Sequence record: OQ708376.1 | Length of the DNA: 64,000 nucleotides | Direction: 5' to 3' (one strand) | Shown here: positions 14,704-18,621 of the stretch, piece by piece | Position numbering within the stretch: the first letter of the stretch is position 1 | Layout of the letters: every line of letters begins with the position of its first letter | Notes under the pieces: generated by a model | Told to the model about the DNA's origin: nothing | Seen by the model: the letters and a program-made list of their open reading frames with translations, nothing else | The model's database searches: none | Program-made: the position numbers and the translations under genes

Positions 14704-15099
14704 ATGCAATATAATTATCGTGAACTAGTTGAAGCGTTAGACGAAATTACCGGAAGAGATGAAGACGAAAGTTTTTCAGTTGAAGTTGAATCCGATGTTG
14801 TAGCAGTTGATGTTCTTAAGGATATTACCAAATGTCTTATTGATATTGTTGATAAGATTAAATCTGGTGAAGACCAAAAAGAAATTGTAGATAAACTACA
14901 AAAAGCCTGTGACATTTTGTCTGACATTCGATATAATGATGAAAGTACTGAAGTTGCTGATGAAGAAGTGTTGGAAGCCATTGCAGGTTGTTTTGGAACT
15001 GAAGGTATGGGACCATCAATTGACAAAGAAGGCGTACAACACTATAATGAGCCTGGTGCACCATCTTATGCTGCACGTCAAGGTTTTGTTGGAGACTAA
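14704..15099 (+). CDS. acidic hypothetical protein
   Basis: 131 aa; translationally coupled to the previous gene. Confidence 0.7.
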   Translation: MQYNYRELVEALDEITGRDEDESFSVEVESDVVAVDVLKDITKCLIDIVDKIKSGEDQKEIVDKLQKACDILSDIRYNDESTEVADEEVLEAIAGCFGTEGMGPSIDKEGVQHYNEPGAPSYAARQGFVGD

Positions 15100-15102
15100 T
15101 AT

Positions 15103-15483
15103 ATGTTTCCAGAACCATCACATAACAGTACTGAATATCAAAATAATGTACTTTCCAAAGTTAGGGAAGTACATGAATCAGATTCAGAAATAACAGACCG
15201 TATGCTTCTGATGTCAATTTTTGAAAATTTCAGAACTGGCGGTGGTTTACGTCTTAGCAAGTTTGGGTATGGAATTTGTAAAGAAAATAATCTTTATGAA
15301 TTTACCAAAATCCCCTTGCAAAGAGAATTTAAAAGTTCTATAATGTTTACATCACTTGACAGAATATGTACTTCACCTTATTATGTTGAAGGTCAGTACA
15401 TATATCTGACAGATGCAATGATAATAACTGAATTAACATTGTGTTGTGATGATTTTAAACAGTTATTTTCTATTCATATGTAA
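15103..15483 (+). CDS. hypothetical protein
   Basis: 126 aa; GGAG RBS; GLRLS...LDR...PYY pattern. Confidence 0.7.
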   Translation: MFPEPSHNSTEYQNNVLSKVREVHESDSEITDRMLLMSIFENFRTGGGLRLSKFGYGICKENNLYEFTKIPLQREFKSSIMFTSLDRICTSPYYVEGQYIYLTDAMIITELTLCCDDFKQLFSIHM

Positions 15484-15506
15484 GAAAAATGAATTAAAAA
15501 TAAATG

Positions 15507-15534
15507 TTGACAAGATAGAATGATGTGATACAAT
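15507..15534 (+). promoter_or_regulatory. sigma70-like early promoter P1
   Basis: TTGACA-N16-TACAAT with extended TG and an A-rich upstream region. Confidence 0.75.
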
Positions 15535-15599
15535 AAGCATCAGACATAAAGTTTTCAAGCGACACAAGATGTGAGTTTGAAAAAAAAGAAAAAAAGTGA

Positions 15600-15627
15600 T
15601 TGACAAGTTGAAACGATGTGATATAAT
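15600..15627 (+). promoter_or_regulatory. sigma70-like early promoter P2
   Basis: TTGACA-N16-TATAAT with extended TG and an A-tract UP-like element. Confidence 0.8.
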
Positions 15628-15688
15628 GTTCACATCAAGACAGCAAAGAGATTTACCTTTTAAACACACGGATGATTCATGAAGTAAC

Positions 15689-15735
15689 AAAGGAACTGAT
15701 AAGTTAAATTATTTTAACACAGTTCCTTTACTTTT
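15689..15735 (+). terminator. long hairpin / terminator
   Basis: AAAGGAACTG(15689-15698)...CAGTTCCTTT(15720-15729) with inner stem GTTAAA/TTTAAC, then ACTTTT. Confidence 0.6.
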
Positions 15736-15755
15736 GCCCACGGATTGGCTATAAT
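15727..15755 (+). promoter_or_regulatory. sigma70-like promoter P3 for the AAA+ gene
   Basis: TTTACT-N17-TATAAT, 41 nt before ATG 15797. Confidence 0.55.
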
Positions 15756-15796
15756 AGAAACTTAAACGATTTTATCCAACAAAAGGAAATATATAC

Positions 15797-17122
15797 ATGA
15801 CTACTCAAAACGATATCCTGAACGTTAAACTGACTCCAAAGAAAGCTAAAGAAGCAATGGCACTAGCTGACATGATTCAAGATAGCCTGATGATTTGGGG
15901 TAGCCCAGGTATCGGTAAGTCTGCAATCGCTCGTCAATACGCTGATGAAAATTACCCACTGCGTAAAGATAACGTAGCTAAAATCGAGTTCATGAAACAA
16001 CAAATCGAAGCTGACCCTGAAAATGCTGATCAGCTACGCCGTGAACTGGCTGCATTTGAAGCAAAACTAATCGACCAAGATACTAACTTTATCGATTTCC
16101 GTTTGTCTCAAATCGAACCAAGTGACCTTCGCGGTATTCCAGTACCAGAGAAGCTTTTCCGTAAAACTGACGGTTCTCTTCTGAAAGAATCTGAGCTTGC
16201 CGAAGCAAAAGATTATGTAGCTGAAACTGCGGTAGTATGGGCTGCACCTAAAGTTCTGAAATTGTCCGAAGATTGGAAAGGTGTTATTCTGTTTGACGAA
16301 ATTAACTCTGCAATGCCTATTGTTCAGGCAGCGTCTTATCAGCTAATCCTCGACCGTTGTGTTGGTGAGATGAAGCTACCTAAGACTGCACTGATTCTTG
16401 CAGCAGGTAACCGTGAAACTGATGGCGGTGTAACTTTCTCTCTTGCTACACCACTGCGTGACCGTATGACTCACATTGAGATGATTCCTTATCATCAAGA
16501 TTGGATTAACGATTATGCGATTGCAAAACGTTTGAACCCAGCAACTGTTGCGTTCATCAACAACACTGGTTCTAAGTACTTTAACACACTTAGTCCACAA
16601 GATCCTTCTCACAGTGGTGGTACTTCTCCACGTTCATGGGAAGCAGTAGCACGCTACGAAGATCTCAAGAAAACTAAGACAATTGATAAAGAAGTGTTCC
16701 GTGCAATGATTGCTGGTCGTGTTGGTGAAGGTGTTGCAACTGAATACATTGAGTACGTTGAGAACGTTGCTAAATTACCAGATACTATGTCTATTCTGTC
16801 TGGTGAAATCAAAGAAATCGACGCAACGCTGGATATTTCTGCGAACTACTTTATCACTCTGAACTTGGTTTATAAAATTATCGACCTGTTCAATGAGAAG
16901 CAAGAACAACGTCTACCAGTGGAAGAATGGGGTAAACTGTGTAACAACTTCATCACCTTCCTAGACCATAACTTCTCTGCAACTCAAGCAGAACTGGCAG
17001 TACTGGCAATTCGTACCATCACGCTTCATAAGGTTGCGATTTCCATTAAAGATGTACCAGCGTTTAAAGATTTCATCGCTAAGTACTCTGATCTTGTACG
17101 TAAAGCACGCTCTCTTGGCTAA
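15797..17122 (+). CDS. MoxR/dynein-related AAA+ ATPase (AAA_5-type)
   Basis: Walker A WGSPGIGKS; DFRLSQIEPSDLRGIP; Walker B ILFDEINSA; sensor AAGNRETD; arginine finger PLRDRM; SPRSWE. Confidence 0.9.
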   Translation: MTTQNDILNVKLTPKKAKEAMALADMIQDSLMIWGSPGIGKSAIARQYADENYPLRKDNVAKIEFMKQQIEADPENADQLRRELAAFEAKLIDQDTNFIDFRLSQIEPSDLRGIPVPEKLFRKTDGSLLKESELAEAKDYVAETAVVWAAPKVLKLSEDWKGVILFDEINSAMPIVQAASYQLILDRCVGEMKLPKTALILAAGNRETDGGVTFSLATPLRDRMTHIEMIPYHQDWINDYAIAKRLNPATVAFINNTGSKYFNTLSPQDPSHSGGTSPRSWEAVARYEDLKKTKTIDKEVFRAMIAGRVGEGVATEYIEYVENVAKLPDTMSILSGEIKEIDATLDISANYFITLNLVYKIIDLFNEKQEQRLPVEEWGKLCNNFITFLDHNFSATQAELAVLAIRTITLHKVAISIKDVPAFKDFIAKYSDLVRKARSLG

Positions 17123-17136
17123 TTAACAAAGAGTTG

Positions 17137-17171
17137 TTGACAAGAAGGATGCCTAATGGTATCCTTCTTTT
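17137..17171 (+). promoter_or_regulatory. overlapping terminator and sigma70-like promoter
   Basis: Hairpin AAGAAGGATGCC-TAAT-GGTATCCTTCTT plus TT coincides with TTGACA(17137)-N17-TATCCT(17160), which has an extended TG. Confidence 0.6.
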
Positions 17172-17196: not shown

Positions 17197-18621
17197 ATGT
17201 CAGATAACAAATCTACTTCAAGATTCAATGAAGTATCTCCGGCACTCCAGAAAGAATGTCAAGAACGTCTGGTTCTGGCTCGTACATCTTTGATGTTAAC
17301 TGCACCATTCTTTGGTGTACTCGCTTCACGTTTACGTCCAGTTCCTAATAATACATGGTGTCGTACTCTAGCAGTGGATGGTAAACATCTATTCTACAAC
17401 GTAGAATTTGTAATGGGCATTCAAGACCCATCTAAAAAGAAAGAATATGAAGAAGCTATTCGTGAAAAGCACCCTGAAGTTACAGACGAACAATTAAAAG
17501 AAATGACTGAAGGTTTGACTGATGAAAACCTTGTTGCTGTAATTTGTCATGAAATTCTACACTGTGCTTACGATCACTTCCTTCGTCGTGGTATGCGTGA
17601 TCCACAACGTTATAACCGTGCAGCGGATTATGCCATTAACCAAATCATCGTTCGTGAGAAAATTGGGAAAATCCAAAGTTCATGGTTGTATGATAAAAAA
17701 TATGAAGGCATGACCGCAGAAGAGATTTACATTCTTCTTGAAGAAGAAGAACAAAAAGAAGATGGTGAAGGTGAAGGTCAACCACAAAGTGGCGGCGGTG
17801 AAGGTGAAGGTAAAAATCGCGGTACTTTTGGCGATATTAAAGATGGTAAGGGTAAACCAAAAGGTACTACCATTGACCAGCATGACGTTCCACAAGAAGG
17901 TCAAGAGGGTGGTTCAAGTGAACAGCAAAAACGTGATTACATGGATGATTTCAAAACAGCAATGATGAATGCTGCTCGTGCAGGTGGTACACCAGCAGAA
18001 ATCGCTCGTATGATTAACAACTTTAAAGAACCAAAGATTGACTGGCGTTCAAAACTTCAACGTACACTTCGTAGTTGGTTGAAGTCTGATGCAACATATC
18101 AAAATCCGAATCGTCGTTCTTGGGGTGCAGGTTTTGGTTCTAATGGCTCATTCTATGGTAATCCAATTTACCCAGGGATGAAACCAGATGATGATATTGA
18201 TATTGCGATTGCACTAGATGCTTCTGGGTCTATTTCTGAAGATATGCTTCGTGATTTCATTAGTGAAGTTCTTGGCATCACTAAACAATTCAAACAGTTT
18301 AAGATTCGTATCATGACTTTTGATACTGAAGTTTATACTGTAAAGGATTACAAAACTGGCGAAGAACGTAAGATTCTGGAATATCCAGTAAAAGGTGGTG
18401 GTGGTACTGACTTTGAAGCAGTATGGGTTCATATGAAGAACGACAACTACAAGCCTAAACAGCTTGTAATGTTTACTGATGGTGAACCGTGGCAGTCATG
18501 GGGTGATCCAAACTACTGTAAAACACTGTTCGTGATTCACAGTAACCCAAATAAAGTTGCACCATTTGGTGAGACTGTACACTACGAATATGAAGCTGAT
18601 AAAAAGCGTCAACGTAGTTAA
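17197..18621 (+). CDS. HExxH metallopeptidase-like domain plus C-terminal VWA domain (DUF2201-type)
   Basis: APFFG, TLAVDG, VICHEILHC (HExxH), N.AADYAIN; G/E-rich linker; MIDAS DASGS, GGGGTDF, FTDG. Confidence 0.9.
   Translation: MSDNKSTSRFNEVSPALQKECQERLVLARTSLMLTAPFFGVLASRLRPVPNNTWCRTLAVDGKHLFYNVEFVMGIQDPSKKKEYEEAIREKHPEVTDEQLKEMTEGLTDENLVAVICHEILHCAYDHFLRRGMRDPQRYNRAADYAINQIIVREKIGKIQSSWLYDKKYEGMTAEEIYILLEEEEQKEDGEGEGQPQSGGGEGEGKNRGTFGDIKDGKGKPKGTTIDQHDVPQEGQEGGSSEQQKRDYMDDFKTAMMNAARAGGTPAEIARMINNFKEPKIDWRSKLQRTLRSWLKSDATYQNPNRRSWGAGFGSNGSFYGNPIYPGMKPDDDIDIAIALDASGSISEDMLRDFISEVLGITKQFKQFKIRIMTFDTEVYTVKDYKTGEERKILEYPVKGGGGTDFEAVWVHMKNDNYKPKQLVMFTDGEPWQSWGDPNYCKTLFVIHSNPNKVAPFGETVHYEYEADKKRQRS

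Follow-up and report, generated by a model that had tools for sequence, protein, structure and literature searches.

A candidate promoter-proximal terminator module with short leader RNAs upstream of the MoxR/DUF2201 operon of Rak2-like jumbo phages

In phage lambda, the PR'-tR' unit (6S RNA, Q) and the oop RNA are the closest described cases of a strong sigma-70 promoter with a terminated transcript of ~80-200 nt directly upstream of an operon, and for PR'-tR', as would be the case here, expression of the operon depends on getting past the terminator. An element of this kind, pairing a short leader RNA with an intrinsic terminator close to the promoter, lies in the gap at positions 15484-15796 of a 64,000-nucleotide stretch of sequence record OQ708376.1 (the window), which comes from a 121Q/PBECO4-like jumbo coliphage of the genus Asteriusvirus (Rak2-like). 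The locus differs from PR'-tR' in that a further promoter (P3) follows the terminator and that the downstream genes encode a MoxR-type ATPase and a VWA protein rather than late proteins. A search of the near-identical 121Q genome, on which all genome-wide counts were made and in which the gap lies at 274014-274326, gave no match to the Q antiterminator family PF06530, other Q families not being tested. Strong early promoters known from virulent coliphages, namely the T5 N25/P25-type promoters, the T7 A1-A3 tandem array and the T4 early promoters, are the second point of comparison. The two main promoters of the gap (P1 and P2) resemble these in their consensus hexamers, A-tract UP element, TG extended -10 and tandem array, and differ in that a terminator stands here before any gene and that a 16-nt spacer is combined with both a -35 and an extended -10.

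On balance, the gap appears to be a promoter-proximal terminator module that would produce short leader RNAs upstream of the MoxR/DUF2201 operon. Host RNA polymerase would read the tandem promoters P1 and P2, and their transcripts would meet a conserved terminator ~150 nt (P1) or 55 nt (P2) downstream, where most would end as non-coding leader RNAs of ~197 nt and ~103 nt, respectively. The operon would then be fed by the fraction that reads through and by the weaker P3, while the same hairpin would terminate the upstream late virion operon. We infer both the early timing of P1 and P2 and the efficiency of termination. An RNA-binding factor may recognize the conserved A-N-GGA(U) words on either side of the terminator and so determine termination or what becomes of the RNA. 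The features of the module are as follows.

15484-15796: control gap, between the 126-aa gene (15103-15483) and the MoxR-type AAA ATPase gene
15485-15506, plus strand: A/T-rich, UP-like tract of P1, part of 48-nt direct repeat D1
15507-15534, plus strand: P1, -35 TTGACA at 15507, 16-nt spacer, TG at 15526-15527, -10 TACAAT at 15529-15534; 11/12 matches to consensus
15580-15599, plus strand: UP-like A tract of P2
15600-15627, plus strand: P2, -35 TTGACA at 15600, 16-nt spacer, TG at 15619-15620, -10 TATAAT at 15622-15627; 12/12 matches
15634-15688, plus strand: 5' part of the predicted P2 leader RNA, with AAGACAG near its start and ACGGAUG at 15668-15674 as the first A-N-GGA word
15689-15736, plus strand: predicted intrinsic terminator, 10-bp basal stem plus upper stem (15689-15729), -14.4 kcal/mol, tail ACUUUUG
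15727-15755, plus strand: P3, -35 TTTACT overlapping the U tract, 17-nt spacer, -10 TATAAT; 10/12 matches
15740-15745, plus strand: second A-N-GGA(U) word, ACGGAT, 3-5 nt past the U tract and within the P3 spacer
15783-15799, plus strand: ribosome-binding site AAGGAAA and ATPase ATG; a ribosome-binding site is annotated at the equivalent place in phage UE-S1
15797-18621, plus strand: downstream operon of the MoxR-type AAA ATPase (15797-17122) and the DUF2201 metallopeptidase/VWA protein (17197-18621), with Pfam and PHROG matches

The gap is non-coding and holds no conserved open reading frame. Only one frame of at least 30 aa is listed within it; it is on the minus strand, begins with TTG and has 75 aa. 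A small leader peptide was considered and rejected, as the 11-codon plus-strand frame at 15672 shrinks to 3 codons in phages A4 and RaK2 and is not conserved.

The original prediction had named two strong promoters at 15507 and 15600 with similar downstream sequence, and both points were borne out. P1 and P2 show the features that define sigma-70 promoters: their hexamers, conserved in relatives, are 16 nt apart (16-18 nt being usual for the class), a TG extends each -10, and a UP tract rich in A/T lies 5' of each -35. They are predicted to be near-perfect sigma-70 promoters with host RNA polymerase as the reader. The A tract of P2 appears to resemble the consensus for the proximal UP subsite. 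Transcription would start at ~15539-15542 from P1, at A15634 from P2 and near 15762 from P3. The two promoters, each taken with the A tract 5' of it, make up a direct repeat of 48 nt whose copies are 71% identical and 93 nt apart, more than chance would give. P1 is conserved in every Asteriusvirus clade as well as in the Klebsiella phages RaK2 and Muenster. P2 occurs throughout the Asteriusvirus clades but in neither RaK2 nor Muenster, indicating that it arose by a lineage-specific duplication. All of these phages retain P1, the terminator hairpin and tail, the -10 of P3 and the ribosome-binding site.

A long hairpin at 15689-15735 had been proposed to end the P1 and P2 transcripts ahead of the ATPase gene. 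Its arms (15689-15698 and 15720-15729) are complementary at 10 of 10 positions and are followed by ACTTTTG to 15736, so that the hairpin, judged by its sequence and predicted fold, is a canonical intrinsic terminator; the end first claimed for it takes in the tail, as the arms themselves end at 15729. A strict terminator scan missed it because its loop exceeds 8 nt. When 14 lineages were folded, hairpins of -12 to -18 kcal/mol were predicted, each with a U-rich tail, and in RaK2 each arm is one base shorter (GGAACUG/CAGUUCC becoming GGACUG/CAGUCC). Across an alignment of 17 lineages, 92.3% of the stem cells are paired, against 20-57% when the partner strand is slid, and 3 of the 10 stem pairs have changed on both sides (GC to AU, CG to AU). 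Covariation in related phages had been suggested as a check, and the covariation score of the stem was reached by 0 of 500 shuffles. The folds of the P1 and P2 transcripts compared with shuffles gave z = -3.9 and z = -2.5, respectively. With a covariance model of the unit, the locus scored 83.6 bits and everything else 30 bits or less, the next match being a generic terminator; the unit is single-copy per genome. The region matched no Rfam family, the best hit being a chance-level mir-239 on the minus strand (21 bits against a threshold of 49 bits). At the equivalent place, an ARNOLD-predicted terminator is annotated in G17, and the CBB paper names the equivalent hairpin terminator Torf215, also on the basis of ARNOLD.

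The comparison on which the conserved layout rests covered 17 lineages of at least four genera, pEa_SNUABM_19 among them. Within the genus, a 701-base stretch around the gap matches 21 Asteriusvirus records (PBECO4, 121Q, phAPEC6 and G17 among them) at 99-100% identity and diverged Asteriusvirus members at 79-97%. Distant relatives were found through the ATPase protein (58-79% amino-acid identity) and their upstream gaps compared. Virion structural genes lie 5' of the 126-aa gene and the DUF2201/VWA gene 3' of the ATPase gene, and this order of virion genes, 126-aa gene, gap, MoxR ATPase and DUF2201 is kept in RaK2, Muenster, Hallingskeid, PHA46, EJP2, BF and SNUABM_19 and also in fHe-Yen9-03/04, GAP32, CBB, XbC2 and Kaldavass. 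A promoter precedes the terminator in all 17 lineages, so that all of its transcripts include the terminator. In the distant relatives, the promoter sits at or overlaps the stop codon of the upstream gene and is followed by a leader of ~25-35 nt with a UUAAGA-like start and an A-N-GGA(U) word, then by a G+C-rich hairpin with a tail rich in U. Another A-N-GGA(U) word comes 3-8 nt past that tail, and the ribosome-binding site after it. The second word is found at its conserved position in 16 of the 17 lineages, and a genome-wide check showed that a U tract followed by GGAT is not a general design of 121Q terminators. Promoters with the TG-containing extended -10 word TGTGATATAAT elsewhere in 121Q (10457, 90285, 261804) come after a terminator and not before one, and in the distant relative PA5oct the ATPase gene is preceded by a terminator and then a promoter; the four non-coding RNAs of PA5oct map elsewhere in its genome. 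The arrangement at the gap probably yields a short leader RNA or throttles the operon.

The original prediction had also given the ATPase gene a promoter of its own, and P3 at 15727-15755 fits both this claim and the comparative data. The P3 -10 is retained in Asteriusvirus, in RaK2 (as TATCAT) and in Hallingskeid, and is degenerate or absent in PHA46, BF, Yen9-04, GAP32, CBB and XbC2. No sigma-70-like promoter was found between the terminator and the ATPase gene in BF, Yen9, GAP32, CBB and XbC2, indicating that in these phages the operon would be fed by read-through, barring a promoter of an unrecognized type. This favors a reading of the hairpin as a cis-acting promoter-proximal terminator, that is, an attenuator.

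Selection on the module was gauged within Asteriusvirus with the third codon positions of the adjacent ATPase gene as a near-neutral yardstick. Identities to the window (%) were as follows.

Third codon positions of the ATPase gene: UE-S1 90, ph0011 82, EcMJ 76, JNE01 66, A4 63
P2 core: UE-S1 100, ph0011 95, EcMJ 84, JNE01 89, A4 84
Leader: UE-S1 94, ph0011 98, EcMJ 89, JNE01 89, A4 78
Hairpin plus tail: UE-S1 100, ph0011 98, EcMJ 94, JNE01 92, A4 92

Since these identities exceed the third-codon level, the stretch from P2 to the ribosome-binding site is constrained. P1 and the P1-P2 spacer, with the exception of the hexamers, are near the neutral level.

Of the original interpretation, which holds up in part, the idea that P1 and P2 make short RNAs or an attenuated leader is supported by comparison and not by expression, through the promoter-terminator order, the covarying stem and the constrained leader. 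Several points weigh against it. The covariation reflects just two or three substitutions that arose independently. Co-oriented genes in these phages also seem often to be separated by terminators, which may be leaky. At the next junction of the operon, from the ATPase to the DUF2201 gene, there is a hairpin that resembles a terminator and has a T-rich tail (17137-17169, the terminator itself at 17142-17169), overlapping a promoter-like TTGACA-N-TATCCT, and the CBB paper places terminator Torf216 at the same junction; the short RNA could then be a by-product. The gap of EJP2 (283-600 of the fetched sequence) is rearranged, with an extended -10 promoter and terminator first and, inserted past the terminator, a P2-like consensus promoter (with the start word CACATCAAGAC, as in P2) and a P3-like promoter. 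It looks like a natural experiment that parts the short RNA from transcription of the operon, and a strong promoter past the terminator implies that strong operon transcription can itself be selected. The sole raw RNA run, from single-cell RNA sequencing, held 0 phage reads, another public read set is probably from DNA, and two wastewater metatranscriptomes, with a depth of only 2-7x, gave scattered 151-nt contigs, none of which covers 15543-15756. Short RNAs are usually lost during library preparation. No transcriptome, promoter or transcript-map study of Rak2-like jumbo phages was found in the literature, and the element is undescribed in Rfam or in the literature searched.

The constraint on the leader also bears on a different explanation, which we hold to be doubtful, in which the unit is a stand-alone gene for a trans-acting small RNA of ~60-110 nt that targets host or phage mRNAs, or titrates an RNA-binding protein (CsrA, for example) through A-N-GGA(U), with any effect on the ATPase operon secondary. 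A strong promoter, an unstructured 5' region of 25-55 nt and an intrinsic terminator are the typical build of a bacterial small RNA, purifying selection acts on the 5' part, different genera have retained both the A-N-GGA word and UUAAGA close to the start, and promoter copy number has grown at the site with the appearance of P2 in Asteriusvirus. The window sequence ACACACGGAUGA also agrees at 9 of 12 positions with RUACARGGAUGU, the consensus for CsrA obtained by systematic evolution of ligands by exponential enrichment (SELEX; PMC4347634). Against these points, the terminated RNA exposes a single GGA, the second word lying past the terminator, EJP2 is without the first GGA word, the AAGAC start is general to the early promoters of this phage, and the element is always tied to the same downstream operon.

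A related possibility, which we put forward only tentatively, is that the locus is a factor-controlled RNA switch or decoy across the Rak2-like jumbo phages, with host CsrA/RsmA or a phage protein binding both A-N-GGA(U) words. Binding would decide between termination and read-through into the MoxR/VWA genes, or an abundant short RNA would titrate the protein early in infection. All of the hosts listed below are expected to carry CsrA/RsmA, and a protein-family search found no phage-encoded CsrA in 121Q. The locus resembles CsrA/RsmA leaders and small RNAs in its conserved A-N-GGA words ~50-70 nt apart, one of them similar to the SELEX consensus, and differs in having only two such words, neither in a hairpin loop (a third GGA lies within the stem) and one past the terminator, and in that the GGA of its ribosome-binding site is not conserved across genera. 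As CsrA/RsmA-type sites the words are a lead only, suggested by their sequence. The T4 nuclease RegB targets GGAG, with lesser cleavage at GGAU, and a search of 121Q for the RegB family PF10715 gave no match. Occlusion of the ribosome-binding site, as in T4, was also considered; in that scheme, early transcripts that read through cannot be translated, whereas those begun at an internal promoter can. The tract at 15727-15736 is complementary to 15780-15789 at 9 of 10 positions, with the P3 start between them, although, unlike in the T4-type case, this pairing is absent from both the minimum-energy and the centroid folds of the read-through RNA. On these folds, masking of the site by either the U tract or TTACCTTTT was rejected, and the complementarity is expected from base composition alone.

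The palindrome at P2 gave rise to a further alternative.

15615-15636, no strand assigned: palindrome GATGTGA-N8-TCACATC, straddling the P2 -10
15552-15583, plus strand: inter-promoter hairpin, whose 3' arm holds the middle GATGTGA (15568-15574) and which is followed by an A tract, not a U tract

GATGTGA does occur at 15522, 15568 and 15615, and the inverted repeat is perfect, as had been claimed. The 46-47-nt spacing of the three copies did not hold up as a repeat, since Tandem Repeats Finder shows no such period and only the 93-nt duplication, and the middle copy is the 3' arm of a hairpin, predicted in both the minimum-energy and the centroid folds, that is kept in Asteriusvirus and absent from RaK2. 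Four of the 11 copies of GATGTGA in the window lie within 115 nt, and the word is not enriched (10.75 expected). That the palindrome and the other GATGTGA copies serve as an operator, bound by a dimeric repressor or activator of the host or the phage that turns P2 off or on, is a reading that we consider quite improbable. In 121Q, where 0.27 copies per spacing would be expected, TGTGA-N8-TCACA is present three times (191053, 218282 and 274147), always with a -10 inside it, an exact 20-mer is common to P2 and the promoter at 191053, and the middle GATGTGA is conserved within Asteriusvirus. However, the left arm is the extended -10 word, which occurs 10 times on the plus strand of 121Q and never on the minus strand (0.5 expected), and the right arm stays GTTCRCATC even where the left arm differs. 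At the 191053 paralogue, both arms have changed without compensation in A4 and JNE01, while the -10 and GTTCGCATC are kept. The palindrome at P2 itself is imperfect in three of four sister clades, EcMJ and A4 having CCACATC and JNE01 an inserted base, and it is absent from all other genera compared.

As for the proposal of a CRP-type site, the palindrome has TGTGA and TCACA half-sites in the correct inverted orientation, but its spacer is 8 nt and not 6, it overlaps the -10, and it is not conserved in relatives; the defining TGTGA-N6-TCACA has no instance anywhere in 121Q. The palindrome is unlikely to be an operator and would instead be a by-product of the chance complementarity between the extended -10 word and a conserved discriminator/start-site word. 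The promoter at 191053 is flanked by an 8-bp inverted repeat, ATGTGAAC...GTTCACAT, and has a 128-aa gene downstream, and that at 218282 is followed by a ~100-nt non-coding stretch and then another promoter.

The promoters of the gap share their features with others in the genome and the group. With 11 or more matches out of 12, 121Q has 105 near-consensus sigma-70 promoters on the plus strand and 13 on the minus strand; they are densest at 135-155 kb and have the start-region word tACATCAAG(AC) in common. TGTGATATAAT often occurs without any -35, ACATCAAG(AC) recurs in the start region of many early promoters of 121Q, and P1 and P2 have this start-site word in common with them. The promoter at the gap is of the TGTGATATAAT type in Hallingskeid, PHA46 and EJP2 and of the TGAAAC-N17-TGGTATAAT type in Eneladusvirus and Mimasvirus, a type that corresponds to the "divergent RpoD-like" class of the CBB paper. 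In the fetched gap sequences of CBB (461-489) and GAP32 (731-759), the stop codon of the gene preceding the gap lies within a complete promoter of the TGAAACG type. The CBB promoter upstream of Torf215 does not appear in the retrieved passages of that paper's promoter table; its distance from the ATPase ATG exceeds 100 nt and thus places it outside the 100 nt that the authors searched. TGAAACG in the P2 spacer was rejected as a CBB-type -35, its spacing being wrong and the word not conserved.

Two further sets of sites were observed in the surrounding sequence. Four more near-consensus sigma-70-like sites lie on the plus strand at 14909-14937, 15020-15048, 15316-15344 and 15356-15384, within the pair of genes that precede the gap (a late virion gene and a gene of unknown function) and directed toward the ATPase operon. 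Counterparts are found at similar distances in other Asteriusvirus clades, RaK2, PHA46, Hallingskeid and EJP2, and they could be real internal promoters or be kept by coding constraint alone. The window has 109 copies of the word AGTACTG (for example, at 14944-14950, 15126-15133 and 16998-17005), most of them in the form of the palindrome CAGTACTG, where shuffles give 8.7 +/- 3.0. The word is found 426 and 399 times on the two strands of 121Q against ~22 expected per strand. In the early region of 121Q at 135-155 kb it fills the spacer just 5' of the -10, where P1 and P2 have GATGTGA.

Since the gap is A/T-rich (29% G+C against 34% for the genome) and carries tandem strong promoters, we also weighed whether these prime replication, with their transcripts forming an R-loop at an origin, and find this extremely unlikely. 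Transcription-primed origins include the T7 phi1.1A/B primary origin and the T4 origin promoters, and in 121Q the maximum of the cumulative GC skew falls in the bin at 275-280 kb, beside the locus at 274 kb. That peak is 1-6 kb downstream of the locus, however, and the turn in skew, placed 5-10 kb downstream, probably follows a putative switch of gene orientation there. Transcription-primed origins are not known to have a terminator directly downstream, and most genera have one promoter and a gap of only 140-180 nt.

In phage fEgEco12, an annotation that overlaps the stretch of the upstream 126-aa gene (15103-15483) reads "transcriptional regulator HdfR", apparently for the homologue of its protein. 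A role for this protein as a regulator was rejected, as it has no Pfam domain and falls in PHROG 15638, which is without known function, and the HdfR label looks unsupported.

As a promoter-proximal terminator unit, the gap would place a compact regulatory module upstream of a MoxR/VWA pair of unknown role in phages that infect Escherichia, Klebsiella, Salmonella, Erwinia, Serratia, Yersinia, Cronobacter, Pectobacterium and Xanthomonas. The locus also helps to set the promoter grammar of the group, with the extended -10 word, the start word described above and the TGAAAC -35 of Mimasvirus and Eneladusvirus, and P2 would be a candidate promoter part of very high strength. Should the short RNA work in trans, it would represent a family of phage small RNAs common to many genera.

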